Assembly (NCBI RefSeq): GCF_037042905.1
Contig: NC_087250.1
Location: 9,486,001-9,550,000, forward strand
Direction: 5' to 3'
DNA from: Lytechinus pictus
Taxonomy: Eukaryota
Length of the DNA: 64,000 nt
The stretch's first letter is position 1, and each line of letters opens with the position of its first letter. Under the pieces are notes generated by a model. It saw nothing but the letters and a program-made list of their open reading frames with translations. It did no database searches and was not told the origin of the DNA. A program made the translations under genes and the position numbers. Of the stretch, positions 14,521 to 42,722 are shown piece after piece.

Positions 14521-14642
14521 GGACAGAACGGGTTATAATTTCTAAAATTTTGATGCGGCTATATTCCTCAAGTAGTGGGACAGATGAGACAATGAACAGC
14601 TGGAAGGTCTTTGGCGAAATTAGTGAACCAGAACAGCAATAT

Positions 14643-14800
14643 CGGGTCGTGTGGTCCAGTGGTTACAGTATTGGACTCAAAATCGCTTGGTTGTGAGCTT
14701 GAATCCCAACTCTGCCATCGTCTCCGGTTTGATAAAAAGGCCTTAGAGTGATATCCGTCGTCTATAACGTCAGCCACTCTGATTAACCTACACGTAAAAG
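14643..14800 (+). mobile_element. Degenerate tRNA-derived SINE
   Basis: A box TGGTCCAGTGG and degenerate B box GCTTGAATCCC followed by non-tRNA body. Confidence 0.5.
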
Positions 14801-17562: not shown

Positions 17563-20054
17563 TTATTATCACTATCATCATCACCACCATCATCATCATT
17601 AGCAGTAATACATGTAGAAGTCAAGTATTCTCTACCATCATTTTTTCCACTACCGTAGTCATTTGATGCACTTGTAAGCTTTTTTTATATTCAATTTTAT
17701 TGAATTCAAACTCATTTCATCGTTTCCAAATTGTATTTCATCCTTACTAATTTGACAAATGACTTTGTTTTCCTTGTTTGTAAATAACAATTGTGCTATT
17801 CAAACCTTTTAATATAAGTTATGTAAAAACATTTGTTCAGCCTGAAGTGCCCATCGTGATGACACAGTCAACAACTCTCTGCACATGATGACCTCTATTA
17901 ATAATTTTTTTTGTTTTGAATAATATTTTATTTTCTTCCTCTTTCAAATCAATAAGTTTACAATCACAATTCATATAAATAAAGATTATTTGCATGTATA
18001 CAATCAACAAACAATCAAACAAATAAATATATCAATATCAATGAGATTACAAATATTTTTTAAATGATTACAAATGAAATTAAACTGCCAAATTTCTCTT
18101 CATATAACAATGTGAAAGCAGAGGGATAAAACCCGTATCAATCGACACAATTCCAAATATCGCAAAACAAGTTATTCACAAACTAAGTATCTCATATTAA
18201 AAAAAATAAAAATAAGAGCATACAGTGTATAAATTCATATCAAAATTATCTCAAATCAATATAACTGTACAATTTCTTCAAAACAATAAGTTTTTTTAAC
18301 CCGAAAATATATATATATATATTTTTTTTTTAATGAAAACTCTTATAACTTTTTCCCCCCAAAAAGTACATAATATAGAATAAAATTACCTCAATATTTA
18401 TACTGATCATGTTAATAAATATCAAAATTATGTCAAATCAAATAAATTACTTTTTTCATGAAACTCTATGATCCTTATAAAGAGGGAGGTTAAATAATCT
18501 TTCACTCACCCACACACCCCACACTCTCTACCACACAAACATACAATAATAATAATAATAATGATAATAATAATACAGGCATTTACATAGCACCATCTAT
18601 GTAGAAATATTATATTCCGAGGAACACAAGAAAAGAAAGAATGAGAAAGTTCTATTCTATGCAAATTGGTGTGGAATGATTTCAAATAAAAATTCTCCAC
18701 AGGAAATAAATTCACAGTCGCACTTCACTTAAACCCTAGAGCTGCCAAATCATCGATACAAAACAATGGCCAAAAATAAAATAACCACTTTGCATGACCG
18801 AATGAGTCATGCCTATAAACCAGGATATCAATGAATAACAAAGACAAACCAAAACTTCCTCGACTATTAAAATAACATGGAAATGAAAAGAAGTGGCCAC
18901 ATTGCATGTACTGTAACAGTATGTAAGCCTACACTATCAGTTCAAATGATTGCATTGTCATACTCATGTATCAAAATTTGACAGTTCTCTTTCTAGGATT
19001 AAATACATACCTGTAGGTTTCCAAACTTCCTTGATTATTAAAAAGAAAAAGGAAGTGCGGAGAATGTACATACATGTACAGTTCAAATGATATATCATAG
19101 GAGTTCAATTTGACAGTTTTTTTTTAGGATTAAACAAGTTTCAACACTTCCGTGGCTGTATAGAAACATCAGAGTATAGAAATTTCCCATGTGTGGTGAC
19201 TATGTAATAAAGTGACAGAATTTTCCAGGATTATCCAGATTTCATAACTACCATGACAATTAAAAGTGAATTCATAGATATTCCCAGTAGATTTGCACAA
19301 TATGGCTTGTATTCTGAAGTCGGGTTAAATTAAACTCGGGTTAAAAGTTGTGGTTTAAGTATGGATAGCCAATTCTTACATAAACCACTGACAGTAGAGA
19401 TATCATATTTCAGCTCACTTGGCTTTCAAATCATTCATAATTGTCTAGAAAGCATAAATAGATGATTATCTTCACCATCGATGAATCAGGAAAGAGCACG
19501 GTAAATATAAGAAATATACAACTTTAAATTTTGACACTTTTGGCTTCCCATGATTTCAGCAGAGAGTTAGACCATGGTCTATAAAGTTAACCTGACTTCA
19601 GAATACAGCCTACATGTATATTTTTCCCCAGTGAAGGTTTCAAAACTTTGACTACAAAAACATTAGCACTGTTGAGCAATTCTCTAGTACACTTTAAATG
19701 ATTATTGTGTCATAAAAGTATTTAACTTTTTTGAGGACTCATTCAACAGGTTTCAGTGTTTTCTTCATTTCTTTTCTATCAAACTTCCTCATTGCAAGAT
19801 ACTAAATCAGAAGTAAATTCAAGTTCATACATGCAAGTATTCATTAGCCTGACTGAACCATTACCAAGAAATTATTGGTTTTATAATTCCATGTAGTTAA
19901 TAATTAGCAATTCGTGGAGACAGATAATACCAAATAGTCTCTATACGTGTGAAAGAATTATTGTTTTGTATACTGTAGGGCTAAAATAAAAAGGTATGTT
20001 TTTACCACTGATTTGAATCTGTTGAAATCTGCTATTGATCTTGTATGAGGTACA

Positions 20055-23200: not shown

Positions 23201-24447
23201 TACATGTGTACCACATAAATATGGTATCAAATTATGTGGAAGAACATACTCTTTCAGGCCATATGTGCTTATGACATATTTTTCCTTAAATTGGGGATTT
23301 GTGAGGTGTCAATTTTTTTTTTTTTACTCACATGGTAGTGGAGACCTACATGTACAATACAATTTCTTATTGTTGTTGTAATTTATATCTGAAAGTATTA
23401 AATACGCTTGTAACTCAAATTTCATTTCTGAATCCAAAAGGGTTTTAAAGAAACTGAATTCATTTCTTAATACAAAATAACAAAAAAAAAATATGCATTT
23501 CAATAATTCGCCATGTGGTATATTATTATTCACATAATTTGCACCAAGTGAAGTCTCATGAGCAAGAAGTACATGTGCAGGCTACTACCATGAACAGAGG
23601 CCCAAAAAGTGCAGATTTGAGAGCTAATAAGGGTCTGAGCTGTCAGACTAGTCCATATGAACATTAACTACAATACAGACAAGATTGTCTGTTCAACAGA
23701 AATGACCATTGGTCTGCTGTGCTCACTCAAGATCAGTTATACTATATGCAACCTAATGTACACTGAAATAGAAACAGCAAGTTTTATATACATGTAAGTG
23801 CTAGTCTGGTTTGAAGACCCACTTGTTGATCAAAAACACTGTTCTCACTATCTTCCTATAACTAGTTTACTGGAAACTACTTTAACGTGTAGTGAGAACG
23901 GTCGAATCGGTCTTGGAAGGGATCTTCCAAACCAGTTCAGAAAACCACCTCGCGATGTAGTTTTTAAGATCGCTTCGCCCGGGTAAACTGGTTTTAGCGC
24001 TAGTGAGGACACAACCGTTCTTCAGGAAGCGATCTTCGCACATTTTGAGCGCGGTACTCCACATGACACGAGTAGAATGCCTACGCTGCGGTTTTGAATT
24101 TCGCACGAAACATATCACCCCACTGAGAGCGTTTCCTTAGCAACAAGATCCCTTTATGTGAAGTGATTTTGAAAACAACTTTCATGTGATCAAGTGAGAA
24201 CGCTAGCAAAACAATCTTCCAAACTGGTTTCCTGAATCGCTTTCCACTAGTTATCTAGTTTTAGAAAGTGTAATGAGAACGGCCTCATAGTTTCAATCAG
24301 GGTCTGTGTCTGCAGACTATTAATGGTCATTGTCAAGCCATGGTCAATTAAAAAGAAGAAATACAAGGAGGAAAATATTGACTCATTTAGGAGGGGAAGG
24401 CAAGGCAAAGATAACAAGATTCTGTTCCAAACCTGATAGGACCTGCA

Positions 24448-24930
24448 TTAAAGGGGAAGCTCACCCTGAAAAAATGTTTATTGAAAAAATAGCAGAAAAA
24501 TAAGAGAAATTATTGCCAAAGGTTTGACAAAAATTCATCTAGGAATAAAAAAGTTATTAGAATTTTTTAATAATCATTTGATTTGTGACGTCATATGCTA
24601 ACAGCTTTCTTACATATCGTGTCGTAAAAAAATCAATGAAATGTCCTTTTCTCAGAAAATCGAAAATGGTTTTTACTGTAGTATATCAATATTACAAATC
24701 ATTTTACACCCATTCCCAAAAAGCAAAACAAGTCATCACAAACAATAAGAAAATTGAAATTTATGCATCAACATATCCTGGGGCAGCTGCTCTTTTATGA
24801 CGTCAAAAATGCAGAAATTAACATGCTAATAGCTTTCTTTATATTTAATGGATTTTCCTCAAACCTTTCCCTATATTTTTTTCTGCTATTTTAACAACAA
24901 ACTTTTCTTCAGGGAGAACTTCCCCTTCAA
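24448..24930. mobile_element. Kolobok-like non-autonomous element
   Basis: TTAA-AGGGGAAGCTCACCCTGAA ... TTCAGGGAGAACTTCCCCT-TCAA with long subterminal inverted repeats. Confidence 0.65.
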
Positions 24931-26294
24931 TACTTTGAACACTGCAGTGTGTAGTAATAATATTTCTAGTAATAATAATAACAATAATAATAATAATACA
25001 ATAATAATTAATATTTCTGATTAAATTGTATGACCCTCTTCAAATAATTCAAATTCTTTTCAAGAGTTTGAAGATGTAATTAAGTTATGGGGGGGGAATT
25101 AGACAGAGCTTCTGGGATATTGTGTCCTAATATGTTCAAAATAGTCCTGGAAAATTATGTTTTTGCCTGTAAGAAACAAGCTTTGCATATTATTGTCAGT
25201 GAATAATGCATGGAGTTCTGAAAGGGCAATTATTGGTCTAGTTATAGTACATTTAAAGGGCAAACCTGTTACCATTTGTAAGGACATTCTTTAGGAATGT
25301 AGAGAAAAAAATGTGTGATGGAGCAGTCCCTTCCGGCATTAATTAATTAACAAATTTTGCATATTCTAGTCAGTGAATAATGCATGGAGTTTTGCAAAGG
25401 GCAATTATTGGTCTAGTTACAGTACATAAAGGGCAAACATGTTACCATTTGTAAGGATATTCTCTACAGTGTAGTATGTTTCAAGGTACACCATGTATCT
25501 TTCTTGGGCAGATGTTGGTCCTGAAAAGGACCACCTAATATCGATGTTTCAACAAGTGTGTTCTTGTCATCCTCAGGAGATATTCTCTACATTCCTAAAT
25601 AATGTTCATAGAGAAACAATGTGTGATGGAGCACTCCTTTCCGGCATTAATGATTAACAAGAATAACTGAAGATCATAATTGAGATGGTGCAGGAACAGA
25701 TTGTCATCAAACCACAATGGCACGCACTAAAGATTGAACATTGGTCATAAGGAGGAGTTCAAAGGTCAACAGGCAATTAATGAATGACAGATTGCATTAA
25801 TATACATGTAGGATGCCATATTGTCAGTTATTAATTAAAAAAAAAAAGATAATCATTATATTTGAACTGCCTGAGGTTTTTTTTTGTTATACTGTTGTTT
25901 TTAATATTCCATTTTGCGGTTTGCTTGCATTTTTATTTATTGGGTTAATAACTCCAAAATCAAATCTTTTTTTGTGGGGGGGAGAAACTGCCTTCACTAC
26001 ATATAGTGTACATAATATGCAAAATTTAAAGGACAATTCCACCCTACTAACAAACGTTGGATATAAAAGTTATGGCATTTTGAAGTTCTGCTTAAGTTTG
26101 CGTACAGTTTTACATGCACATCCTGGTCTGTACGCAATGTATTGTATTTTATTACATTAAATATTCCAATTTTCTCCTTATTGTCCAGAGAAACAAATTC
26201 CTCCTTGAACATGTGGAATTATCATAAATTGTTTAATAACATGACATGGTTCAGTCGAGATGGTTCTTATCAAATGTCAAATTAATTAAAATGT

Positions 26295-26577
26295 GGAGCG
26301 TTGTGGCCCAGTGGATAAGTCTTCTGACTTTGAAACAGAGGGTCGTGGGTTCGAATCCCAGCCATGGCGTTATTTCCTTCAGCAAGAAATTATCCACATT
26401 GTGCTGCACTCAACCCAGGTGAGGTGAATGGGTACCCGGCAGGATTAATTCCTTGAATGCATGAGTGCTGAAGGGCAGCTCGAGCTAAAGCCGGGGTAAT
26501 AATAATAATAATAACGCACCTCAGAATAGAATATTTCTAGATAGATGGCGCTATATAAATGCCTATTATTATTATTA
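26295..26577 (+). mobile_element. tRNA-derived SINE inserted in a Kolobok-like element
   Basis: A box TGGCCCAGTGG, B box GGTTCGAATCC, body CACTCAACCCAGGTGAGGTGAATGGGTACCCGG, TAA-rich tail; copies at 55976-56400, about 36490-36695 (-), 48505-48700 and 50990-51200 (-). Confidence 0.8.
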
Positions 26578-28526
26578 AATGCTATATAATTCAAACAATA
26601 AAAAGAAGGAATACATGTAGTGAGGGAGATCATCAACTCTTTCATTTGCATGTCACTGAGTTGCATAACTGTTTGGGAAAAAAATCAAGCGTAACTTTAA
26701 AATGTCAAAACCTTCTTAGTTTACATCTGACTTTGAAGAAATTTACAGCATTTATACTTGTCTGATAAATCTCTTTTGATTCAAATCAAAATTTGTATGG
26801 GGTGGACTTGACCATTGTAAGAAATTATGATAGCATCCTTCACATGTTTGGTAAATTACACATGTATGTCTCTGACCATTTTCATTTCACATCTGTAACT
26901 TGATACTGGATGTAGTAATCCCTTTGGCAGCTCATACAGAAGCTATACTGGGATGATGAATAAAGTGAGCCACTGGAAGGAGTGTCATGAAGTGCAGAAA
27001 TGGTGATGGATAGACATAGCAATTTTGTATATATGTACAGTCAAACATGCTATGCTGAGTGCAAGTAACAAACCAAAGTATCACTTTAATCTTACAGAAT
27101 ATTAGAAATCACATTTTCCGGGTGGTTTTTTTTTCTTTACCGTACAAAAAAAATTAAATGAAATTAAGAATAACTGAAGAAAACATGTTTCGCCCTAAAA
27201 GGATTTTTGAGAAAAATGAAAAATTGTAATAAATATTCACTTTCTTATTCAATGTATTAATTTTTTATGTAAATGTTGGGAAGTCGAGTTTTCACAAAAA
27301 TATTGTTTTCCCCAAAATAGCACAATATATTGAGACCCCCGTAGAAGCGGCACCGCTTCGGGCACCATCCCTGGTGATCCGTCTTTGAAGACGTGTAACC
27401 ATGGTAACATGACTTCTATTTAGACTCTATCCTTGAGTATTGAAACTTTCTGGACTAATATTAGCTAATTGGAATTCAGATTTTGAATACCAAAAATCCC
27501 AATTTTTTTTGAAAATATTTAGGAATAGGCCTAGACCCTATCTCTCCTACAAATTCATCAAAATATTGAAAAAATTAACAGTAATACCCATTTTGGTGGG
27601 CGACATCATGATCAATATGAGACACATGGCCACATTTCTTCCTTGTTTTTCTGTTAGGTCTGAAGACAGTTATCTGTAAGTATAATCTGACCTTTCATTC
27701 ATCTTCTTTTGATAAAGTACAGTCCACCGACTGGTGTATTGCACTCATTCAATGAACAAGGTTATGATAACGGTGAGCTGTATAGCTGTATATAATATTG
27801 TACAATATAATTTGGCAGGTATAGTCTGCTGGTGTGTAAGTTACAGTGCCAGTGGCCGTACCATCTTTCAGAGCAAAGAAAAGGTGGCCCTAACTAATTT
27901 ATTTCTAAAAAGGCTAAAAAAACCTGGATGTGATCAATTCATGGTGATAAGATATTGATCCATCAGGCATCATGATCATCGCTGAAATAAATTATCTGCC
28001 ATATGACTCAATATAGACAATAATAACAGATGAATTGGAACAAACTTCACAGATGTTACTGTTAGTGTTAGTTACAAAGATAACCCTTGAGTTTGACTTG
28101 TGTTATACGTTAGTGAATGTTATTATTTTACCCCCCAAAAAGGGCCTGGTCAGGGTGTCGGCAGGCAGTTGCGACAGATGGGCCGCAGCCCACAGCTTGC
28201 CCGACCGGCACCGGCCCGGTAAAAATCTGACGCGACACTGCGCTGCACAGCGAGCTCTGGCTGCTGCAGTTTGCAGCTGCTAAGGCTAGACTGTACATTC
28301 TACTCCGGATGCACTTCCCGGAGTCGCGCGTCGAAATATGACACGACATCGCACCAAAAACATCACGACTACACGTCAACATACCATCAACAGTCACTTT
28401 TGAGTACTATCACACATTACTTCACATCTCATCTTTCTGATCCATCCAATGAAATCTCAAATAAATGATCCTAAAATAAAAATATTAACCATTTTCTAAA
28501 ATATTCGGATATTATATGTGACTCAC

Positions 28527-28538
28527 CTGTTTCGCCAT
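28527..28538 (-). CDS. SNX9: Sorting nexin first coding exon (MAKQ)
   Basis: caagATGGCGAAACAG|GTGAGT: good Kozak context, perfect phase-0 donor; joining to the SH3 exon gives MAKQCKVLYDF, the N-terminal spacing of SNX9-family proteins; next to a GC-rich segment. Confidence 0.75.
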
Positions 28539-28565
28539 CTTGTATTTTAGTCACTCCCTCGACTA

Positions 28566-28575
28566 GTCACGTGAC
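28566..28575. promoter_or_regulatory. Palindromic E-box / CLEAR-type element GTCACGTGAC
   Basis: Perfect 10-bp palindrome about 30 bp upstream of the sorting nexin ATG; matches the MiT/TFE (TFEB) and USF consensus. Confidence 0.55.
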
Positions 28576-31351
28576 AATAACATGCCATCTGATAAAACTA
28601 TTCTCAATTTCTAGACAAGATTGTGTTAGACCTTCCGAGTTCATTAACTAAAAAAATGAATAAATCTAAACTATATGCTGTGATATAATTTCATGTATTT
28701 ATTCTAAGAATCTTCTAACAGCCTAATCTTTATTCGATTTTATACCAATGGTGATAAATTTCATTTTAATTGTAGGTAGTTGCAAAGCTTGTGGCTAAGG
28801 TCAAGATTATAGACTAGATAATTTGAACGTCTATGAAGCGGAACCATGAACATGACTCACAAACTTTTATAACTATGGGGCGGCGTATCCAGAAATATAT
28901 ATTATGTTGATTTTTTTTTCCTTGGGGGCGGGAGGGGACTCGGTCGTTATTTAAATGGTTTAAATGGTAATGTACTAGGGCGGCGGAGCGAAGTTGAAAG
29001 TGGGGGGGGGGGACAGGGGAAAGTGGGCAAAATATTAATTTACACCACATCTAGTACAGTGGTGTAATGAGCAAAGCATTTTGAGGGGGCTAGATATGTC
29101 GTATCAAGTAAAGTTTATAAGAAGCTGCGAGTGAGCAAAACGAGCGAGCAAAAGTTTTGACATATAGAGGACGAAAATCCAAATTGCGTGATAAATTTTG
29201 ACATAATTTCCGAAAATAATATCATATTTCACCTTTGTCTCTTACTGGGAAAAATGGGCACTGTCTTAAAATAAAGAAAAGATGAGGGGGGCTAGATATG
29301 TAGTATCATGTAAAGTTTATAAGAAGCTGGGAGCGAGCAAAGCGAGCGAGCAAAAATTTTGACATTTTTATATGACGAAAATCCAATTTTGTGATAAATT
29401 TTGACATAATTTCAGAAAATAATATCATATTTTACCCTTCTCTCTTTCCTTTTCTCTCATTTTTTTCTTGGTGGTGAGTTTTTTTTTGGGGGGGGGGCAA
29501 GAGCACCCCCAATCACATTAATAATGAAACGTAGGGCACGTAGGATTATTCTTACAATTTTTTTTTCATTCATAAGTAGTATCATATAAAAATTAGAATA
29601 TTGCTTTGTTGTTTCAAAGGGGCACTCGTTAACACATCAAAATGGGTCCTTCTCAGGTGAAAGGGGCACAGAACATGTTAGTGAAGAGCACCTTTCTGGG
29701 GTAAAATGGGGCACTGAATAGGGCACTTACAAGAAGGCAAGGGGGCACCATGCTCTCTCATAAATCTGGTCCTTCTCAGGTGAAAGGCACAAAAATACGT
29801 TCAAGAGGGGGCATTTTGGGGTAAAACTTTGCACTATTTAAGTGCTTCGAAAAGTGGCGGCACCTATAGTTCCGAAACTTCTCAATAACGGGGACATTGT
29901 GACTGGCATTTCGTTGGGTATGGAAATTGCAAAAGAGACAGGGGAGGAGAAGTGGATGTAAAATAAAACTTGCCGCATATATTGCAGTCACCCTTTATCA
30001 ATTAAGTAGACCAATAGGCATTTACCATGGACTCTCATCTTTTTTTTAAGTCCTCCCCCCCCCCCTCTCCCCCTCCCCCCTCTCCCTCTCTCTCTCTCCC
30101 TCTCTCTCTCTTCCTCTCTCTAATTGTAGGGCCACCTCCTTTAATAATACACTGCTCATTATTTCAGACAATTAAACTGAAGAAAAAAGAGACAAGAGAA
30201 AATTGCCGGTTCATCATGATGCTTATTATGTTCTGACCATGCATGTATTTACTTTTTATCACAATGAACATTTTATTCATATTCATTGACTTAATATCAA
30301 AATGCAGACATCAATCTAATACCCAGTGGCGTACACTGCAAATATACCGGTGTTGATTTAACACCAGCTCAATCGGTATATCGCAAAACATCAGAGAGGT
30401 GTTGAAACAGCACCACAAGATATATGCATTCTTAACTTGTGTTGTTTCAACACTTCCCCTGGTTTTTTTCGATTCAGATACCGGGTTAAATGTTATATTT
30501 ATATCGGTGTTTTGCAGTATGTTTGTCCATTCGCCCCCCTCCCCCACACACACTTTTTTATCACGGAAATGTGAAAATGATCATCAAATTATTATGTTAT
30601 GTATGCATGCTCAGCCCCCCCCCCCCTACTTTAAAATTAGTGTGTTAAATGTGCCTTTTAGTACTAATATTTCACTTATTGGAAACTAATTTTCTTTCTG
30701 ATATCACAAGTGCGCTGACCCCCCCCCCCCCCCCACCATCCCTACCGCCAAAGCCGTAAAGGGGGAACAAAAAATTTGGGGCGGGGCCAAGCTTTGGTGT
30801 ATGTGGTAGCATTACTGACAAAATCTCTGAGTGAGCGAAGTGAGCTAGCAAAACTGTTGACTTTTTAAAAATAATACACTAAAATAATTTTGTGATAATT
30901 AAAGTTTGACATAAATTATTATTATTCACTTGATATAATATAATATTTCAAAGTTTCCCCCTTCACTTTTTTCTCCCCTTTTTTTTTAAGTTTCTTAGTC
31001 ATGAAATGTACTATGGGCCCCAGCCCCCTCCCATCTCATCAACTTTGAAGTGTTCTCTGAATATGGCCTGTATATTACAAGCGCGTCATCTTCAATAGTG
31101 GCGTAACGAGCTAAAAAAAATTGAGGGGGCCAAATGTGACGTATCAGGTGAAATAAATAAATAAATAAGGTGCGAGCGAGCGAGCGAGCAAAAAGTGTCA
31201 ACAATATTCAGAAAACTAGCATATTTTAATATCTCTCTTTCCTTTTTTTTCTTTATCTTGTTTTTTCTTGGTCGTGAACATATTTTTTTTTGGAGGGGGG
31301 GCAAAGGGCCCCAAGGCCCCCCCCCCTCATCTGTGAGCCAGTGATCTTGAG

Positions 31352-31475
31352 CTACCAGAAGAAATTCTCCTGAACGCCGACGTGTTCTGCTGCTGGTCCG
31401 TCATGTTCGTGATTAGATTCCTTAACGTACGGAGTCTCCGGCTGGGATTTCTTCTTCAATTTCCGACGAATCCGT
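31352..31475 (-). CDS. Shisa-like membrane protein A, last exon (cytoplasmic tail ending ENFFW*)
   Basis: tttttgacag|A CGG ATT...TTC TGG TAG; phase 2 matches the upstream exon; 124 coding nt, same as paralog B. Confidence 0.75.
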
Positions 31476-32310
31476 CTGTCAAAAAAATTAATTTGTGGAA
31501 AAAATACAATTGTAAACGAATATTGATATTTTAAGTTCCATTCGATTTCGTTTGTTACTAATGGTTGGGGTAGTCGTCGACAACTCAGTTCTGATCGGGA
31601 TATAATTACTTCCATTATCTTCAGGGCCCGCGGAACGAATTTGGAAGTTGGGGGGGGGGCTGACCATGCAAAATATCACAATCAGATGGTAGTTTTTAGT
31701 TTTTGTACACTGTTTTGGAAAAAAGTTAGGGAGCAAAAGCCGACCCTGCCCCCCCCCTCCCATTTCCGCGGCCCCTGATTTTTAATTATCATCACTGTAT
31801 TGAGCCCCGAAAGGAGGGGGCAGACAATTGTTTATGGGGCAAAGATTGTTAAAAGGTGCGTGAGAGCAAAATTTTAGAAATCTTTAATACAAATGTTTAG
31901 TTTGCGGCAGAATTTTTGTTTACATCTGAAAATAATGTATTTTTTCTCTTTTTCAATGTCCTCTTTCTTCTTCTTCTTCTTATTCTTTTTGTTTGTTTCT
32001 CCCCTTTTCTTCGTTGTGGAAATGTTTTAGGGTCAATGCGCCACCCCTACCCCCATCTGTATACGTCAGTAATCAGCATTGACACTTTCGCACAACTTCG
32101 TCATAGATGTATCGTAGATAGGTGACGTAATATAATGAGCCAAACATTTTGAGGGGGTCGATAAGGGGAATCGTGTAAAGTCAATAAAAAGTTCCGAGCG
32201 AGCGAGTAAAAGTTTTGACATTTTAATTACAAAAATCCAAATTTGTGATAGATTTTGACATAATATTTACAAAACAATATCATATTTCACCCTTATCCCT
32301 TATCCGGTCG

Positions 32311-32347
<37 letters not shown>

Positions 32348-32951
32348 GGGGGGGGGGGGAACCCGGGGGGAGCCCTCCAAGTCCCCCCCCCACCCTCCAT
32401 TTGTACACAAGTGTCTTAGATTTTATTTATACTTTTATAAGGAAGAAAGATGGAAATAATAAAGTGCTTAAGTCAAAGATTTCGAATCTGTAATCTTTTA
32501 TAGAACCTATTAATGTTAGCAAGAAAAAAAAACGGCCTGCATCACGCGCTTATCCCCATCAAGCTAAATTACATTATTTGACATCCAATCCAGCGGCAGA
32601 AGTTGGATAAATTTTTATGGCTCATAAGATAAAAAAACGAAGACCACTTTGAAAAAGAAGGGGGGATGGGGCGCAAAGGGGCAATGTTGCGTACAGATGG
32701 GGGGATGACTTGGGGGCACTTTCCCACCCACCCCACCCCCCCCCCCCCAAAAAAAAAGGGTTTAGCATCCAAGAAAAAAAAGAGAAAAGGAAAGAGAGAA
32801 GGGGAAAATATAATATCATTTTCTGAATATTATGTCGGAATCTATCACAAAATTTGATTCTTGTAATAAAAATGTAGAAATTTTTGGCTCATTACGCCTC
32901 TGGGGGGGGGGGGGGGGGGGGGAGAAAGAAGAAAATAATACACAGTCTTAC

Positions 32952-33137
32952 CTTCCAACACAGCGACAGTTACAAAGACCGTCCATGCAGCCATCCCAAA
33001 ACTTGTAGATGCGCGCCCTCAAGCGTTTAAGACAAGAGAACGTGTCATCTCGGCAATACGTATAGAGAAATACCAATACGATCAATACTGCCGTTGCTAC
33101 GCCGAGGTAAAGGCCTACTTGTTCCATCATCCCAAGC
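32952..33137 (-). CDS. Shisa-like membrane protein A, transmembrane exon
   Basis: caatag|G CTT GGG ATG...GGA AG|GTAAGA; 186 nt; TM VGLYLGVATAVLIVLVFLY followed by TYCRDDTFSCLK...MDGLCNCRC; homologous to 41760-41945. Confidence 0.85.
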
Positions 33138-33727
33138 CTATTGATATAAATAACAGGAAGATCAAGGCACTAGTATATAAACACAAGGGTATAAATAAAG
33201 AAATCAACAAGTTGTATGCCAATATAATTTATCCAGCTTGGAGCGAGTGAATTTGCATATATTTCCTATTTGAAAATGTTTTGTAAGGATTGATATAACT
33301 TTATTTAAAGTAAAAAAAAAGCAATAATATATATATATATATAATATGTGTAACATTATACATGTACAACAGCATATATATATATATATATAATAGATTT
33401 TACAGTAGCGCTGATAAAAGCTGCAGGTATTTCCACATAATAAACTTTTGGCTTAATATCAGTGATAACGATATTAAAATGGGTTTTTGTTTAAGTCCGT
33501 GTCTCTCAATTTTCGGCGACAATCCAGGAAGGGGATGGGCTTGTCCCATCTCCTTTTTTAAAAACTATTTCTTTAACTATTAATTATGTTGAACATCAAA
33601 CAATATAAGCGAGTCGTTGCTCCCCTCTAACCCACCCCCCCCCCCTCTTTCTCTCTCTCCCTCCTTCTCCCTCTCCCTCTCTCTTCCTCCCTTTCCCTCT
33701 CTCCCTCTCCAATTACCCAGGCCTTAC

Positions 33728-33931
33728 ATCTCTGCGTTCTGTTCCTCGGCTGGCAAGCAGCAGCTGTGGAGGTTCCCATCGTCGTCCGCCCGGTCGTTCT
33801 GGCAACACTCCGTGAACGTGTTCGGCGAGCCGTCCTCGTTCGTGGCGGGGCAATAGTAACTATTCCCCGGAAACGATGCGGGCTTCTCGGGGTTGATCGG
33901 ACACGGTGTTACCATGGCAACAGCTTGATAT
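33728..33931 (-). CDS. Shisa-like membrane protein A, six-cysteine ectodomain exon
   Basis: Encodes MVTPCPINPEKPASFPGNSYYCP...FTECC...LHSCC (C..C..CC..CC); donor AT|GTAAGG; homologous to 39329-39518. Exact acceptor uncertain (33931 or 33923). Confidence 0.82.
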
Positions 33932-34764
33932 CTACTTTAGATGTCAAGGAAGAAAATATAAGGAATGTTTAAGGGTCCAAATTCAGATACAAATTCAAAA
34001 TTCAAATTCAAATTCAGCTTCATCTCCAAAATCATATAAATTCATACACTTAAAGCACGGTTTACCCAATATTGGGTAAAATGGGAACATGCATGTTTGT
34101 TGGGTAAAAATACACCAAATATTTTGTAAATTTTACGCAATGTTGCATTGAAATTTACTCTTCAAACATGCATTTTCCCCATAAGAGAAAAAATTACTCA
34201 GCAAATATGCATGTTCCCTTTCGACCCAATATTGGGTAAATTTTTACCCCTGTTTTTAGAGTTTATTTAAATTCTAATTCAAACTCAAATATACATTCAT
34301 GTTTAGATTAAAATTCATTTCCAAGTTTAAATTCAGACTCAGATTCTAATTCTAATTCTAATTCTCAGTTGAATTGCACATTCGAATTCAAAGTCAAATT
34401 GAGATTCAAATTCAAATTTAGGATCGAATTTCACATTCAAATTCAAGTTTGAATTTAGAATCCGATTCCAATTCAAATGTCAATTTTCAACATTAAAATA
34501 GTAAAATACAAATCGTTACATACAATTTTATTCGATAGTAAGACAAAATTGATATATAAAAAAATTTGCATTTCTTTTTCCTGGGTGGGCAATTAATTAT
34601 TTCAAAATTTTCACATTCGTTTGTTGTCATTTCCAGCATAACAAAATGAAATACTAATAATTGCAATGACATTATACATATTTCATCTGGATATCTGTGG
34701 TTATAAATAAAGTTATACAGTATTCTTATAACACAATCAATGCCATTAATGTTTTGTTATAATC

Positions 34765-35028
34765 ACTAGCGTACCTACGGGGGGGGGGGGGGGGGGGCAG
34801 GGGGGCAGTCTGCCCCCCCCCCCTGACGAGCCAAAACCCATACAAAAACATATCTCTGCCCCCCTGACGACCTTGAAAGACCTTTTTTGCCCCCCTGACG
34901 AGCTTGAAGACCTTTATTGCCCCCCCCCCCCCGACGAGCTTGAAGACCTTTTTTTTTTTTTTTTTGCTTGTCAAATTTTTTGGCGGCCGATTTTGCCCCC
35001 CCTGTGGAAAATCCTAGGTACGCCACTG
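34765..35028. mobile_element. Short non-autonomous DNA element with CAGTGGCGTA-type ends
   Basis: Ends CTAGCGTACCTA / TAGGTACGCCACTG, poly-G/C interior with repeated GACGAGCTTGAAGACC; relatives at 9473-9713 and 15957-16212. Confidence 0.55.
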
Positions 35029-35454
35029 GTTATAATTCATCTTAAGCATCATGTTATACACATCATATTTCGTTACTTTCATACATGCAATCATCAATTC
35101 AATTCAATTTGTTTTATTTCATATTCAACGGAACAAAGTAAAGTGGATGATCGACGTATATAATTAAAATGAAAATTGCAAATGAAACTTAAACAAACAA
35201 TATAAATTGAGGTAGGTACAATGCATACTTTTTCCATAAGTAAAACAAAATTAGAAGCAAATTATCATAAACATAATGAAATTAGAGGAAATGGAGGATC
35301 CACTCAAATGCAAATTATTGTAGAGTGTGGATCCATCATAACCCCCTCCCCATTATAAATAAATCTGCACTAAATATATCGAAAATAAATAAATATTTTT
35401 CGTTGTTCCCAGGATAATAAATTACGATTTACAAAGTACATCAGACTCACTTAC

Positions 35455-35526
35455 CAAAATCACCACGAAGGGTAATGCCAAGATGAAACTGCAAATCAAC
35501 AGAAGGAAAATCCTTATTGTAGCTAT
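35455..35526 (-). CDS. Shisa-like protein A, putative signal-peptide exon with ATA in place of ATG (possibly defective)
   Basis: accATAGCTACAATAAGG... reads (I)ATIRIFLLLICSFILALPFVVIL|GTAAGT, aligning with MARIR... of paralog B; no in-frame ATG after the upstream TGA. Confidence 0.45.
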
Positions 35527-35716
35527 GGTCCTTCAATGTTCAGATCTAAACGCTGGAAACATAAATATGTTTGTTTACATTCTCCGATGATTCTTCTCCG
35601 AAGTTGAAAAAAAAATCCTCCAATGAGGTAACGATAAGACGGTGTTTATCCAGTATCTGTATTCACATGGGAAAGTCCAACGTATTCCGAACTTACTAAT
35701 TGGCAATTGCTATTTT

Positions 35717-35730
35717 GTTACCATGGAAAC
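35717..35730. promoter_or_regulatory. RFX X-box-like motif GTTACCATGGAAAC
   Basis: Matches the X-box consensus about 190 bp upstream of gene A exon 1; a second match GTTACCATGGCAAC at 33908-33921. Confidence 0.4.
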
Positions 35731-36839
35731 ACAAAATGTCCTGTTCAGGGTAAATCGTGAATTTAATACACTAATTCATTCTTTAAGCCTGACGCAGAAT
35801 AGTGAAAAGGAAATTACACGATATCTAGAAATAAAGGATTTCAGTTTATTTGAAAATGACTGAAGATAGAACGTTATTCCTGTTATGATGTTTTTGGAGT
35901 GCGAATATTATTCTCAATATCGCATAGTACGCCTGTGAGCTTTATCTGACAGTATACTTGGTCAGTTTACCTGCACGTGTAATGACTTTTGGGAGTTAAG
36001 GTATAACCATTGTAATATTGATTCACAATTCGCATGGTTGCACTCTCAAATTCAAATTCAATTTCAAATCGATAATCATATTGCTCGAGTTTCATCTGTA
36101 TAATAGCAATCTGTTAGGGCCTACTCACGAGGCCGAGGGGCAGTAAAGGCAATTTTTCTCGTGTTTTTTTTTTCCTGTCCGAATTATTATTCCGGACTTT
36201 TCGCATTTACTATATACGGGGAAACTCTCTACAACGCAACAATTCCTTTGAAAATGCAAGTCAAATCAAAAAGAGGTTTTTGTCGAAAGTTGGTGGACCG
36301 TGACAGCAGCAGAATCGGAATCTCTTGACTCTTGACATATATGCAATATTGTTCGTCCGGTGCAAATTTACGGATGATCTGCTGTCCCAGTCCACCAACT
36401 TTCGATAAAAGCCTTTTAGCTCTCCATTATGACTGTAATTGCATTTTATAATGATAATAATAATAATAGTGATAATAATAATAATAATGATGATAATAAT
36501 AATACTAATATAGGTATATTTACCCAGGGAAGCTCCCAGCGGGCCCTATAGCTGCTATATTACCCCGGCTTTAGCTGGGGTGCCTAGGCGCTCAAGCATT
36601 CAAGGAATTTTTTCCTATATACCGGGTACCCATTCACCTCACCTGGGTTGAGTGCGACACAATGTGGATAAATTTCTTGCTGAAGGAAATTACGCCAGAG
36701 TCAGGAGAGTAATCCATTCGGCCACAACGCTCCATCCGAAGGAATCGATGCGTTGTTGAGAGTTTCCCCTTAGTAAATTTTACTTGGACGAATGGAAAGG
36801 GTATAAAAATATTATTCAATTTACAATGGACAATATGAT

Positions 36840-37444
36840 TTAAAGGGGAATCCAGCCTTGGCCATAAAATGTTGTGTTGGGAAGGAGAAAAATAAATTAA
36901 ACAGAATGGTGAAAGTTTGAAAGAAATCGGACAAGCAATAAAAAAGTTATAGCTGCTATAAAATTGAGATTTCTAATACTATGTAGATTTCAAATTGGCA
37001 ACTGAATAAGTAAATTATGACAAGGGGCAAGGACAACTTTCCCAAAGGCCATGTACTTTATTATCAGGGATTTGTGGTTTTCTCCTAAGTATACCCATTC
37101 CCCTGGGGCAGTAATCTAAATATAGCCCAGGTAGTATATTGTTTTATGTCCTCATGAAAGAAAAATACAATTTGAAATAAAACTTTTGGGAAAAATGACA
37201 TTTTAGCCATAATATGTATTGGAGTACATGGAAGAGTAGTCCTTGCCTTACATCACTATGACATCCCATATGCGGCCAATTTGAAGTCTCCATGGATATA
37301 GTGATTACCAATATTTACAACTTTTAAAAATTAATAACTTTCTTGTTGTTTGTCCAATATTGTTCAAACTTTCACCTATCAACTTGTCTGATTTTTCTTT
37401 TCCTTATAAAAACAAGTTTTTATTTGGGTTGGATTCCCCTTTAA
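36840..37444. mobile_element. Kolobok-like non-autonomous element between the divergent Shisa-like genes
   Basis: TTAA-AGGGGAATCCAGCC ... GGTTGGATTCCCCT-TTAA. Confidence 0.75.
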
Positions 37445-38288
37445 ATCCGGAAGACTTATTTAGGTAGACAAACATTTTGATAGAAGAAAAATCAAATAAG
37501 AGAAAATCGGGATCGTGAACCCTCCCTAACCTGTTAACTCGTTCCTGTGAAAGGCGAAAGAAAGACAACGTTGTTTATCACTGTCTTTGCCCTACTTACT
37601 TTTATCATTTGAGTTCTCTATTTGGTATTGTTACTCCTTTTCTCTCTCAATCATCTTTTTCGATGCATTTTATTTTTTTCTATTCTTGTTTTATTCTTTT
37701 TGTTCATCTCCGTTTTTATCCTCCGTTAATCTTCTTCTCCTTCTTCTTCTTCTTCTCCTCCTCCTAATTATTCTTCTTCTTCGACGAAAAGAAAAAAAAA
37801 TGTTTCATAGTACCTCCCCAAAATAAGAAAATAGCAATAGTAATTATAATAATGATAATAGAAGAGCAATGACACTAAAACCGAATTCGGATTTCAACCT
37901 CATCACGATTACAACCATGCATTTAACTACCGCCATCTACGTTTACAGCCATTACAATTTGTTTCGACAAGCGTAAAGTCTCCAATAAACTTTATCGATT
38001 TTCTTGTGCCTTTCTTAAAGTGAAGGAATAGATTATCGATTAAAGCTACATCTTTCTTTTGTATTTGTTTCCACCCTTTTCAATATAATCTCGCTAAATA
38101 AGAACACCCAGTCGCCATTTTGTTATATCTATAACAAGCTCTTATGGTTAGTGTAGAGTGTGCTAGGGCCTGAGTAATCGAAAACGGAGGATTGAATAAG
38201 ATTACCTAGAGAAAGGTGGAGACAAAAAGAGGACTATTCAGATGAGAAAACTGTTCTAGATTAAAGGAAACATAATTATTGCTTCAAA

Positions 38289-38355
38289 ATGGCAAGAATT
38301 CGAAAGGAGATTTTATTTGGATGGTGTCTCGTTCTGGCTGTTAAAATAATCCACG
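38289..38355 (+). CDS. Shisa-like membrane protein B, exon 1 (signal peptide)
   Basis: caaaATGGCA...ATC CAC G|GTAAGT; MARIRKEILFGWCLVLAVKIIH; phase 1 matches the next acceptor. Confidence 0.75.
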
Positions 38356-38739
38356 GTAAGTCCCTTTTTTCCATTGCTATCTCTAAACCTGTTTACTGGC
38401 GTAAATAGAGGGGGGGGTGCACTTGCACTTGGGACCACTTTAGCCCCCGAACCCCTCAAAGAAAGGAACACGGGGGCGGAAACGAGGTGAAATATTATGA
38501 ATATTATGTCACAATCAATCACAATATTTGACTTTTATTTTTTAAAAGGCAACAGTTTTCGCCCTCTCGCGTTTTATCTCTTTTTTTATAGAAATCTTGC
38601 CGACATGACTTGTTGTGTTCCCTTCAAAATTGTTTCTAGCTTCTTGCGATTCACGAATCATGTTGAATGATGACAAAAGTGGATGTCTTCACACTCAGCA
38701 TTTTGAGTGTTATTCACGTATTTCCCACAGTCTACTTTC

Positions 38740-39250
38740 TGAACACACTATGAACACATTTTGAATACATTGTGAACGGCGTGCTGTGAATACACTGTAA
38801 ACACACCGTAAACACACTGTGAACACACCGTAAACAAACTGTGAACACACTGTAAACACACTGTGAACAGACCCTGAACGCACTGAACACACAGTTAACA
38901 CACTGTAAGTACACTATGAACACACTTTCAGCACACTGTAAATACACTGTGAACACACTGTAAACACACTCTGAGCACGTACGCTGTAAACACACTGAAC
39001 ACACAGTAAACACACTGTAAACACACTGAACACACAGTAAACACACTGTGAACAGACCCTGAACGCACTGAACACACAGTTAACACACTGTAAGTACACT
39101 ATGAACACACTTTCAGCACACTGTAAATACACTGTGAACACACTGTAAACACACTCTGAGCACGCTGTAAACACACTGAACACACAGTAAACACACTGTA
39201 AACACACTGAACACACAGTAAACACACTGTAACACGTACTGTGCGACACT
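38740..39250. repeat. Minisatellite (ACACACTGTAA-like 9-11 bp units) with a 185-bp higher-order duplication
   Basis: ACCCTGAACGCACTGAAC recurs at 38871 and 39056; lies in intron 1 of gene B. Confidence 0.9.
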
Positions 39251-39328
39251 GTGTTCTATCCAGTAGCGAACAGGAAATGCTTGTTCTATCCTGAAATTTT
39301 ATTTTTACTTTTTTTTTTATTTCGTCAG

Positions 39329-39518
39329 TGTCGTCGACAACATGTGCCATCGACACCACGCTCCCGGAGACTGCGGCGGGCAACAGCTACGAGTGTCCGG
39401 ATACATTGGACGACGGCACAGAGAACGATTTCAATCAGTGCTGTTACAACGATAGGCCCGATGAGTCGGGAAACTTCCATTCCTGTTGTCAAGATGCGGA
39501 CGAGAAATCTGCACAAAA
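39329..39518 (+). CDS. Shisa-like membrane protein B, six-cysteine ectodomain exon
   Basis: ttcgtcag|TG TCG...CAA AA|GTAAGT; TCAIDTTLPETAAGNSYECP...FNQCC...FHSCC. Confidence 0.85.
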
Positions 39519-39681
39519 GTAAGTGCACATATCATCCTCTTGAAATGAATGAGTTTACAAAATTAAATTAGAAATGATTAGGCTATCTCTTTTTGTTATG
39601 ATGCTGATCATCATTATTTGTACTTGTGGTATTGTTGTTATCACTATTATTATTATTGTTTTTATTATTATTATTATTATT

Positions 39682-40611
39682 CCTCTAAACAGGATCAAGT
39701 CCGTATTTTTTTCTTGAATAACTTTGCTCTAACAAAAAGCACCAAGTAATTTCAAGTGCAACTAGGAACTTTACACTACTAATGTCCGAGAGTCTTTCTT
39801 ATCAATCTGGTTGTACCCAAGATAGCTGCCTTCTGAATGTCGTACATCCGAAGGTGAGGAGAGATCTTGGTTATGCAGGCTTCCATTCCCTTCTTCACCA
39901 TTCCTGAGTGACCAATGATGACTGGTGTGACCTCTGCTTTCACGTTCCACATCCTCTCGATCTAAATCATTAGGTCTTGATACTTGAGCCGTTTGTCTCT
40001 TTCCTTTACAGCAATGTTGATATCATGGGGAACAGAGACCTCAATGATATTTACTACGTTGTTGTCTCTGACGATGATGTCCGGCTTGTTGCAGTTGATG
40101 GTTCTATCCGTTAGTATGCCACAGTTCCAATATATGGTGCTGTTATTGATCGTGGTGATCGTTTGTGGCTGATGTTCCCAAGCGTGATCACAAGTCATTT
40201 TACCGCGATCCTTCAGTAGTTGCCAATGGATAAGTTTGGCAATATTGTCATGTCTTGTGATGTACTCAGTTCCAGCAAGAGTCGAACATGCTGATACCAA
40301 ATGCATGATTGTTTCGGTCTCTTTTCCACACATCCTGCAAGTGTCGTCTGTGTCTGTTCTGAGGATAGATTTTTCGTAGGCACGGGTCCTCACCACCTGG
40401 TCCTGAATAGCATAGACGAACCCTTCAGTTTCACCTCTTAGTCCCGCCGACTTAAGCCATTGATGTGTGTCTTTCTGGTCTACAAACTCCCGATGCGTCT
40501 GTTTTTCATGGTGGCCATGAAGTCTCTTGGATTTAAGTTGCTCTTGAAGTTTCTTGTGAAAGGAGCATTTAAGTCTTGCCTTCTCTTTTTCACCGTAGGG
40601 TAGTGTCAGTC
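39682..40611 (-). mobile_element. 3' part of a non-LTR retrotransposon with restriction-like endonuclease (R4/Dong/NeSL type), decayed
   Basis: CCHC knuckle CRMC..ETIMHLVSAC, RHD motif, PD-(D/E)xK-type KPDIIV...IIEVSVP...KY; in-frame TAG at 39962-39964 with the frame continuing to a stop at 39779; ends at (TAA)n; 5' side lost in an N gap. Confidence 0.88.
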
Positions 40612-41759
40612 NNNNNNNNNNNNNNNNNNNNNNNNNNNNNNNNNNNNNNNNNNNNNNNNNNNNNNNNNNNNNNNNNNNNNNNNNNNNNNNNNNNNNNNNN
40701 NNNNNNNNNNNNNNNNNNNNNNNNNNNNNNNNNNNNNNNNNNNNNNNNNNNNNNNNNNNTATTATTATATTATTTATTTTTATTATTATTTATTTTCATT
40801 ATTATTATTATTATTATCACTATTAGTATTAATATTATCATTGATATTTTCATTCTAATTCTTGTCACTTTTTGTGTCATATTTATTATTAGGATCTACC
40901 ATCATCAGCATTCATATTCATAAGCAGTAGTTATAGTAGTATATTATGAGGAGGAGGAGGAGGAGTAGTAGTAGAAGAAGAAGAAAAAAAAAAGGAAGGA
41001 GGAGGAAGGGGAGAAGAAGAAGGAAAAAGAGAATTAGTAAAAAATAAATGAAAATTAGCACCTACGATAATTTTTGATTGCGCTACATGCTTTACTGGAA
41101 TGAGAATTGGTCGTTAGAGACAATAGTGCTTATTTCATTGGATAACATTTCTCATGGGGCACCAAAATATTCCATTCAGTAGGGCCAATATATTGAACTC
41201 GTCCACTACGAGTGCAATATTCCCTAAATCGTGGAATATTTCTGGTATTCCATTCTGAACCACGTAATATAATTAATTTGAATATGGTATAATGGTAGTA
41301 ATCATTTACCTTCCCTTTATTTAATTGCTCATTTATTGGTAAATTCTAGCTAACAGCAGAGCTAAAAGGGCCAACTTACAATGTCATCACAAAGTAAAAT
41401 TACATACATAAAAGTAAAGTGTATATAACTGTAGGTTTTGATAGAATTGCATCAATATAATTTTTTAACAACATTATCAATTATTATTAAAAAATAGAAT
41501 ATAAATATTATTCACAATGCAATTATTTTTTATAATTATAGGTTTTAAAGATAAAATTGCATCAGTTATCATAAAATTCTCCTGAAGACGACAAGAACAC
41601 ACTTGTCGAAGCGTCGAGTTTGGGTGGTCCTTTTCAAGACAAACATTTGCCCAAGAAAGATACATGGTGAACCATGGAACCTACTACACTATTTTTCTTC
41701 GCCATTGAAACCTTCAGAAGTTACATATCATAAAATTGCATCAATTATTATTTGAACAG

Positions 41760-41945
41760 AATGCAAGAGTTCTATAACATCTGTATCATCATCGGGGCTG
41801 TGACCGGGTGCTGCATGGCTGCGGTGTTTATGTGTACATACTGCGAAGAAGACACTTTCCCCTGCCTCAAGAAACTCAAAAGAACCTGCAGGAAATATTA
41901 CAATCTCTTGATGGACGGCATCTGCTTCTGCTCTTGTTTACCAAA
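41760..41945 (+). CDS. Shisa-like membrane protein B, transmembrane exon
   Basis: gaacag|A ATG CAA...CCA AA|GTAAGT; 186 nt; hydrophobic ICIIIGAVTGCCMAAVFM then TYCEEDTFPCLK...MDGICFCSC. Confidence 0.85.
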
Positions 41946-42554
41946 GTAAGTTACTTCTTTTCCATCAGAAAGATTTTGTTTTATCCATATTGTACTGCAC
42001 TCCATCGAGGTGGGAGTATGAATTAGCAGACATTTATTCCTTGAAACGCGGTGCGCGCAACTGAAATCCGAACACCAAGTAATTTTGCAGCATTCCTGTA
42101 AAGTTCTTAAAACCTTCCTATAAATGTTAAGCGCAATATAAGCAAAAACATTAAGGTAATCATGACAAAGACTTTGTCGGTCTGGAGTCGGTTTGGCCGG
42201 TGCTTTTAATTGTTATTGTTTTGTTCAACCAGTCTGCTGATTTGGTTTGATTTTGAGATCTTTGTTTTCAATCTCAAAGTTGATTGAAGATATTGTTTTG
42301 TTTTATTATAAGTAATTAATGTAAAAAGGGAGTAGCCTAGATAGGCCAATGGCTTTTAGTTTCTCCCTCACATCCCATTCATTACTTTGTTTTTTATCGT
42401 TATTTTTTGTCTAAATTGTACAACTGCATGTCATTGTTTTTTTTTTTTTACTCTATTGCATTAACTCACTATATATTGTATATATTAAATCGAATTAATC
42501 TTCACCTCCACATTTATGTTTATTCTCCTCTTCTCCTTCTATATCCCCTTCCCG

Positions 42555-42588
<34 letters not shown>

Positions 42589-42598
42589 TTTTCTGCAG

Positions 42599-42722
42599 GA
42601 AATTACGACGCAAAGAACACAAGGATGGGCCCATGGAGACAAACACACGAAACAAACGGATATTCGATAAACCGCCCTCTGCCGACGATCAGGAACTTGT
42701 CGTGGACCCTTTCTGGGCTTAA
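42599..42722 (+). CDS. Shisa-like membrane protein B, last exon (tail ending VVDPFWA*); full protein 188 aa
   Basis: Pyrimidine tract + ctgcag|G AAA TTA...TGG GCT TAA; the four exons total 567 nt in one frame. Confidence 0.8.

Follow-up and report, generated by a model that had tools for sequence, protein, structure and literature searches.

What are the two small genes, transcribed in opposite directions, that occupy positions 31352-42722 of a 64,000-nt stretch of the sea urchin Lytechinus pictus genome (NCBI RefSeq assembly GCF_037042905.1, contig NC_087250.1, positions 9,486,001 to 9,550,000 of the forward strand; this whole stretch is called the window and its own numbering is used here)? 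They are divergent paralogues, gene A on the minus strand and gene B on the plus strand. We consider it somewhat probable that they are functional, ancient members of an undescribed ambulacrarian family that either forms a new branch of the Shisa-like adaptor proteins or only looks like them. The gene pair is already annotated, yet unstudied, and the Ambulacraria-wide family is new. An earlier, sequence-only reading had picked out the pair; its observation is confirmed, with the corrections given below, and its interpretation is partly supported.

The product of gene A (165 residues) is letter-identical to L. pictus RefSeq LOC129262970 (P0022) and that of gene B (188 residues) to LOC129263831 (P0026), both of which RefSeq names "uncharacterized protein". 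Comparison of one copy with the other bore out the strong divergence claimed for them: the proteins are 39% identical and synonymous divergence (dS) is saturated, and hence the pair is indeed an old inverted one, arranged head to head. Single-exon searches and a 14-sequence ectodomain profile found A and B to be the sole matching loci in the 812-Mb L. pictus genome. As there are only two such loci and orthologues exist in many species, the gene pair is not a chance signal. The shared features on which the sequence-only reading relied are also present. In both genes the exon encoding the transmembrane (TM) segment is 186 nt and the last coding exon 124 nt, with matching phase-2 introns; both products have an ectodomain with six cysteines (C..C..CC..CC) and one TM segment; and the pair retains the motifs GNSYxCP, CC.NDR.D..GN.HSCC, TYCxxDTFxCLK and MDGxCxCxC. 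The description of both as four-exon genes holds for the coding sequence of B, which has four coding exons; A has four mRNA exons, the first of which is non-coding.

The structure of gene A was established from RNA: data from four runs, two of contigs and two of raw RNA reads, were mapped to positions 31300-37299. Runs X1 and X20 each yielded one spliced gene A contig (1618 and 1674 nt, 0 mismatches) composed of pieces 35980/35967..35455, 33931..33727, 33136..32952 and 31475 to below 31300. Each genomic piece that the contigs skip has CT..AC ends when read on the plus strand, equivalent to GT..AG in the minus-strand direction of the gene. Given these GT..AG borders at the skipped pieces and a genome without an intron-less copy, the contigs are gene A mRNA. 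Splicing is thus seen directly for gene A. Exon 1 (35455..35980, minus strand, as are all gene A exons), the 5' end of which lies at 35980 or beyond in the spliced contigs, is wholly 5' untranslated region (5'UTR). Exon 2 (33728..33931; coding 33915-33728, 188 nt), defined by the contigs and by RefSeq identity, encodes the six-cysteine ectodomain, and exon 3 (33137-32952, 186 nt) encodes the TM segment and the juxtamembrane cysteine cluster (YC..DTF.C ... D..C.C.C). The last coding exon (31352..31475, 124 nt including the stop) provides a basic stretch, a variable tail and a C-terminal FFW. Both coding introns are phase 2, and the 3'UTR continues below 31300.

Where does translation of gene A begin? 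Exon 1 contains six short upstream open reading frames (ORFs), with six upstream ATGs, and a signal-peptide-like ORF that has an ATA start and a TGA three codons upstream. The contig junction of donor 35455 with acceptor 33931 puts a TAG in the frame of this signal-peptide-like ORF. As a stop therefore follows the exon-1 ORF at the real junction, translation begins at the exon 2 ATG (33915-33913, context GCCATGG, with an in-frame TAG at the start of exon 2) to give a protein of 165 residues that lacks a signal peptide. The same junction ruled out a coding version of exon 1 having the ATA start, a donor at AA/GTGAGT, an acceptor at 33923 and a signal peptide. A hydrophobic N-terminal leader, a putative signal peptide, is present in B and most orthologues and absent from echinoid A. 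In L. pictus, L. variegatus, Strongylocentrotus purpuratus and Diadema setosum alike, an in-frame stop closely precedes the exon 2 ATG, and the sea-star, crinoid, holothurian, brittle-star and hemichordate members carry hydrophobic leaders. This conserved start without a signal peptide in urchins, set against the leaders of the other groups, shows that in the echinoid A lineage the loss of the signal peptide is derived and conserved rather than a slip of annotation. Zebrafish Shisa-9b also lacks a signal peptide (PMC10531659). The N-terminal domain of A has a net charge of -9, and basic residues follow the TM segment.

Both genes are under purifying selection. Relative to the L. variegatus orthologues (record L015), gene A shows 17 differences in 498 nt, with nonsynonymous divergence (dN) of 0.017, dS of 0.109 and a dN/dS of 0.154, and gene B shows 38 differences in 567 nt (dN 0.020, dS 0.299, dN/dS 0.068). 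The value for A bears on the possibility that A is a decaying, non-functional duplicate, transcribed and useless after loss of its signal peptide, with B as the sole working gene. Several observations could be read in that way. The exon-1 ORF has its ATA start and is out of frame once spliced, the 5'UTR carries the six upstream ATGs, contig depth is low (5-14), and the two raw RNA runs, which were depleted of ribosomal RNA and of each of which about 6% was sampled, gave no reads on the gene A exons, a result that weighs against a functional A. Moreover, S. purpuratus has no annotated A-type protein, and none was found in protein searches. Its genome retains an intact A-type exon 2 with the same MVTPCP start (L014 7222-7458), which faces the B gene (LOC757315) from 2.5 kb away, and a 7-kb stretch yielded neither exon 3 nor exon 4 of the A type; either a large intron or a degraded or unannotated copy would account for this. 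Against decay stand the dN/dS of A between the Lytechinus species, an ORF that is intact in Lytechinus, Strongylocentrotus and Diadema and there begins at the shared exon 2 ATG with its strong Kozak context, the retention of every family-invariant residue, and a charge distribution compatible with insertion by a signal anchor. Hence we regard a decaying A as very unlikely.

Gene B, all on the plus strand, begins with a 67-nt coding exon (38289-38355) that contains the ATG and the putative signal peptide and precedes a phase-1 intron. It is followed by exon 2 (39329-39518, 190 nt) for the acidic six-cysteine ectodomain, exon 3 (41760-41945, 186 nt) for the TM segment and juxtamembrane cysteine cluster, and a last coding exon (42599-42722, 124 nt including the stop) that encodes KKLRRK, the tail and a C-terminal DPFWA. 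Its introns, as predicted from the genomic sequence, have GT..AG borders throughout and phases 1/2/2, and the protein aligns to its orthologues without an insertion at the exon 2/3 junction. An exact look-up of the gene B protein on contigs gave no record.

Intron 2 of gene B contains an assembly gap (N, 40612-40759) that leaves the reading frame unaffected. To the left of it lies a retrotransposon fragment of the long interspersed nuclear element (LINE) type (39760..40611, minus strand), which the gap truncates and which the L. variegatus intron lacks. The type is assigned from the look of its ORF (39962-40396), which resembles a LINE reverse transcriptase at its zinc-binding C-terminus. To the right is a TAT microsatellite. 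Window positions 38784-39675 align to L. variegatus L015:3883-3010 and positions 40760-40924 to L015:2977-2814, an orthologue free of gaps. As the two gap flanks align colinearly to a single L. variegatus intron, their order and orientation unchanged, the gap is intronic and, by this alignment, appears to sit inside a LINE insertion specific to L. pictus. These data address the concern that chance ORFs, or a mis-join over the N gap, might have made an apparent gene B, a concern raised by the presence of the gap within the span of a gene whose exon joins are predicted from the sequence. The colinearity of the gap flanks with the gap-free L. variegatus intron, a product that is colinear with and insertion-free relative to orthologues in many species, the low dN/dS of gene B and the closely related full-length proteins found on spliced Logan transcripts all argue against an artefact of annotation or assembly, which we find scarcely credible. 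As a separate observation, at positions 38784-39232 in gene B intron 1 the 11-nt unit CTGTAAACACA is repeated in tandem some 41 times, and related arrays occur twice in the orthologous L. variegatus region.

How widely is the family distributed? An exhaustive HMMER search, which used only a two-sequence exon 2 profile, gave seven related clusters at 50% identity (E<1e-10), five of the seven bearing echinoderm names and the other two being contig-derived proteins. Full-length members and a 10-sequence profile, used as queries in word-indexed searches, brought in Lytechinus, Diadema, Amphiura and Patiria as well as two hemichordates, Ptychodera and Saccoglossus. With these, orthologues are in hand from Strongylocentrotus, Lytechinus, Diadema, Amphiura, Antedon, Apostichopus, Asterias, Patiria, Ptychodera and Saccoglossus, and the family is present in all five echinoderm classes and in hemichordates. 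The named members are all "uncharacterized" and have no Pfam domain on record. Logan contigs of about 1 kb carry full-length family proteins of 186-187 residues nearest to the Amphiura member; since the Amphiura gene spans 5.4 kb, such contigs are too short to contain introns and thus represent spliced mRNA. L. variegatus has two near-identical loci for A (LOC121416594 and LOC121417709) on one chromosome record and two near-identical B loci (LOC121416595 and LOC121416599) on the same record, their proteins being P0023/P0024 and P0019/P0027. Either the whole pair was duplicated recently or haplotypes were left uncollapsed.

An alignment of 15 sequences from 13 species has 20 invariant columns. 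These comprise the six ectodomain cysteines (C28, C45, C60, C61, C75 and C76), the start methionine M1, Y43, P46, N55 and R65, a set that follows the TM segment (Y113, C114, D117, T118, D138, C141, C143 and C145), and W187, which is at or beside the C-terminus and is usually preceded by an acidic and an aromatic residue. Conserved cysteines thus stand at +1 and +8 past the TM segment in addition to the C.C.C cluster. In the 15 sequences the TM segment lies within about 15 residues of the end of the six-cysteine ectodomain, which is rich in D, N and G and very acidic (net charge -5 to -11), and basic residues lie past the TM segment.

The arrangement of the genes and a phylogenetic tree bear on the age of the pair. 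Head-to-head B-type and A-type genes, with an SH3-PX-BAR sorting-nexin gene downstream of A, are found in L. variegatus and D. setosum. In the window the corresponding SNX9/18/33-like gene lies at about 21300-29250 on the minus strand, downstream of A and colinear with L. variegatus, and hence microsynteny of the pair with the SH3-PX-BAR gene is conserved. The head-to-head arrangement is thus kept in Lytechinus and Diadema and, as seen for exon 2 of A, in S. purpuratus; the hemichordate Ptychodera flava has two tandem copies on one strand (L016 10001-11373 and 13317-19375). Antedon has three tandem copies on one strand (L017 10001-13569, about 14556-15729 and 17639-19673), the middle one apparently without a gene annotation of its own, and Asterias, Amphiura and Apostichopus have a single copy within 10 kb either side. 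In a maximum-likelihood tree of the 123-residue core, rooted at its midpoint, the main split (support 83/92) places urchin A with the sea stars, the sea cucumber, Ptychodera-1 and Saccoglossus, and urchin B with the brittle stars, Antedon 1-3 and Ptychodera-2. With this midpoint root the two Ptychodera tandem copies fall one on each side of the deepest split. The approximately unbiased (AU) test rejected an echinoid-only duplication (p-AU 0.013); a tree with the hemichordate copies monophyletic was not rejected (p 0.118). Given the rejection of a duplication confined to urchins, the A/B split is older than the echinoids, and it may predate the divergence of echinoderms from hemichordates. The proposed lineage-specific subfamily is not confined to echinoids, as the family spans both phyla.

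Does the family belong to the Shisa-like superfamily? According to PMC6991692 and PMC8621455, that superfamily is characterized by a six-cysteine layout, C*C*CC*CC, followed by one TM segment, and comprises the WBP1/WBP1L, VOPP1, CYYR1, TMEM92, FAM159/SHISAL2, DUF2650 and CX families. This layout of six cysteines plus TM segment is invariant in 15 of 15 members of the present family, and the spacing of C-x16-CP-x13-CC compares with C-x15-CP-x13-CC in the L. pictus Shisa protein itself. When full-length B was used in a feature search of the ESM Atlas, the named neighbors were shisa-like-1 (0.87), DUF2650 (0.85), WBP-1 (0.82), CYYR1 (0.81), CX (0.79) and shisa-4 (0.77), and eight of the ten best named neighbors belonged to one family or clan, that of Shisa_N. 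Searches of the atlas with single exons gave nothing usable. Pei and Grishin (2012) reportedly joined families such as those among these atlas neighbors to Shisa.

Several results weigh on the other side. The atlas scores are all below 0.9 and possibly record mere shared architecture, and thus they constitute a lead only. Pfam, including Shisa_N, WBP-1, CYYR1, DUF2650 and CX, gave no family match to the exon pieces, to seven full-length proteins or to the 15 alignment members, and Shisa_N (PF13908; cut-off 22 bits) had no match at E<=10 in any of these sets. In a six-frame search of the genome Shisa_N found the true Shisa gene (G000:C3:33994737, 46.7 bits) and did not match the window; the WBP-1 profile, used in a search of the genome, was also without a match in the window. 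Alignment of the family with L. pictus Shisa, represented by one exon sequence, by hhalign gave a probability of 0.4%, and family profiles found nothing related among the PDB sequences. The model of the ectodomain has four short strands and a predicted local distance difference test (pLDDT) score of 80.6, and that of the full-length protein is poor (pLDDT 56.6). The structure of the mouse Shisa3 N-terminal domain is 5M0W (PMC5892874). With the ectodomain model, Foldseek did not return 5M0W among 22 rows at E<=10 from a library of all distinct PDB chains that includes it. VIA-align gave no Z of at least 2 against 48,161 cluster representatives (the membership of 5M0W in these clusters was not established) and likewise none when the 22 Foldseek rows were re-checked. 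An ESM-atlas shape search with the same model had no match. Small disulfide-rich domains, however, score poorly in fold searches. The lack of a PPxY tail, which that reading had noted correctly, also counts here: a regular-expression scan found no [L/P]PxY motif in the 15 members, and none has a proline-rich tail. Finally, the LOC identifiers of A and B are named in no paper found by literature search. Shisa-like membership therefore finds support in the layout and in the language-model neighbors, and finds none in Pfam, hhalign or the fold searches.

Comparison with the known proteins sharpens the question. Like the Shisa-like adaptors, A and B have a short C*C*CC*CC ectodomain, one TM segment, cysteine just inside the membrane, a short unstructured tail and a total size in the range of 120-200 residues, and these adaptors are their nearest named language-model neighbors. 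Unlike those adaptors, which carry [L/P]PxY motifs that bind NEDD4-type WW domains, the A/B family lacks both these motifs and the proline-rich tail; it has invariant motifs of its own (NDRxD..GN, YC..DTF, D..C.C.C and the C-terminal W) and, as far as searched, is restricted to Ambulacraria. With Shisa proper the family shares a signal peptide (in B), the CP that follows the second cysteine, near-equal C1-C2 and C2-CC spacing and the single TM segment, and Shisa1-5 have cysteines after the TM segment (PMC10531659), as does the A/B family. The Shisa ectodomain, however, has eight conserved cysteines, C*C*CC*C*CC*C (PMC10531659), versus six in A/B, and Shisa proteins are rich in proline in their C-terminal region, whereas the A/B tails are basic and acidic and lack such a region. 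The CKAMP/Shisa6-9 proteins are auxiliary subunits of AMPA receptors (PMC4733035, PMC6470934). They offer an analogy only, that of a small cysteine-rich ectodomain plus TM segment that acts on a partner, with a functional motif at the extreme C-terminus; CKAMPs have a Shisa_N domain and long tails that end in a PDZ ligand, whereas the A/B tail is about 75 residues and ends in [F/M]W(x).

A family of independent, convergent origin must be weighed at this point. In such a family the disulfide-rich single-pass proteins would be unrelated by descent to the Shisa-like proteins and might act as a surface receptor or ligand or as an acidic protein that binds Ca2+ or another metal, the cytoplasmic C-x6-C...C-x-C-x-C binding zinc rather than being acylated. 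The missing sequence, profile and fold links to Shisa_N, WBP-1 and the other families would be expected, C*C*CC*CC is a loose pattern, D, N and G abound in the very acidic ectodomain, and the invariant Y113, D117, T118 and D138 beside the cytoplasmic cysteines suggest a folded or metal-binding module rather than simple acylation sites. Convergence must nonetheless contend with six-cysteine spacing close to that of the Shisa of the same animal, with the clustering of the best named atlas neighbors in the Shisa_N family or clan, and with an overall layout, including the cysteines after the TM segment, that is the same as in Shisa1-5 (PMC10531659). We consider convergence unlikely, although it is the most serious of the competing accounts, and descent from the Shisa-like superfamily plausible, with a little better than an even chance.

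If A and B are functional paralogues of the kind that we favor, how might they work? Their architecture and language-model neighbors make a Shisa-like adaptor mode of action the most likely. Each protein of about 165-190 residues has an ectodomain, a TM helix, a conserved and putatively cytoplasmic juxtamembrane cysteine cluster, a polybasic stretch, a variable tail and the C-terminal Trp. The acidic ectodomain of about 60 residues would be held by three disulfides in the pattern C-x16-CP-x13-CC-x13-CC. B would enter the endoplasmic reticulum by means of a cleavable signal peptide, and echinoid A would be inserted with its N-terminus outside, its TM segment serving as a reverse signal anchor, a mode that the acidic N-flank and basic C-flank fit. 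Whether at the surface or within the secretory pathway, the ectodomain and TM segment would bind a receptor or channel as partner. S-acylation (palmitoylation) of juxtamembrane cysteines is shown for WBP1L (PMC6991692), and the juxtamembrane cysteines of A and B are probably modified likewise; alternatively, given the invariant Y, D and T nearby, they may make up a small site for zinc. The inner leaflet would be where the polybasic stretch rests, and the C-terminal Trp would act as a hook for a cytosolic sorting or scaffold protein; as such it would replace the PY motifs of other Shisa-like proteins and would recall the PDZ ligand of the CKAMPs. A role in biomineralization resembling that of P16, which the acidic ectodomain brought to mind, was without any support.

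A more specific extension of this scheme is that A and B are two subunits of a module specific to Ambulacraria, kept linked since before echinoderms and hemichordates diverged for the sake of co-expression. The module would assist a receptor or channel, as an auxiliary or in trafficking, independently of PY motifs. One subunit would enter by its signal peptide, the other by a signal anchor, and the genes are in tandem in Ptychodera and inverted in urchins. Prediction of an A/B heterodimer from B(24-150) and A(1-127) gave a score of 0.02, which is informative neither way. We view the two-subunit arrangement as a doubtful conjecture; if true, it would define a new functional branch of Shisa-like proteins.

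What lies between the two genes? As the A transcript starts at or beyond 35980 and the B ATG is at 38289, no more than 2.3 kb, largely of repeats, separates them, and the shared 2.7-kb upstream region that had been proposed shrinks accordingly. A non-coding block at 37928..38122, 170-360 nt upstream of the B ATG, is conserved with S. purpuratus (74% over 196 nt) and is a candidate promoter or 5'UTR of B. A second block of 26 nt (36060-36085) conserved with the same species lies near the A start, and there are no others. In S. purpuratus the two blocks are about 650 nt apart. Between them in L. pictus is a stretch (36153..37909) that is not conserved even with L. variegatus and contains a tRNA-like tail of a short interspersed nuclear element (SINE), an AT microsatellite and an inverted-repeat hairpin, with repeat depths in the tens of thousands. 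Hence conserved blocks adjoin each gene with lineage-specific repeats between them, and an ancestral compact bidirectional promoter is possible.

The repeats themselves gave several signals. ARAGORN found no tRNA in the intergenic region, and an Rfam scan of the region found only a hairpin resembling MIR6135 (36268-36417), which matched the precursor model on both strands at 35 bits, below the cut-off of 99. RNA reads had opposite-strand joints at this hairpin, which is probably a repeat similar to a miniature inverted-repeat transposable element. Positions 36500-37299 had very high RNA and contig depth, with strand bias in 36500-36699, and the read ends extended into tRNA-like sequence of the GGTTCGAACC type. 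Between A and B, according to these data, lie abundant repeats, among them a SINE derived from a tRNA.

Outside the window, two near-identical Pro/Tyr-rich ORFs with PPPGY (G000:C21:2017960-2018250 and C21:13617545-13617796) gave sub-threshold WBP-1 matches of 26 and 25 bits. They may be WBP1-like genes of L. pictus and have no relation to the window.

The outcome is a defined, conserved and unnamed family with corrected gene models, which is of modest value without a function. Receptors for Wnt, FGF, chemokines and glutamate depend on Shisa-like adaptors for control of their maturation, surface level or gating. L. pictus is a sea urchin with stable genetics in which knockouts and tagging are feasible. 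The pair offers a natural experiment, in that B keeps its signal peptide and A has lost it yet remains under selection. Were the family to belong with the Shisa-like adaptors, it would represent a deuterostome branch that dispenses with the PY/NEDD4 hook and is marked by a conserved cytoplasmic cysteine module and a C-terminal Trp of its own.

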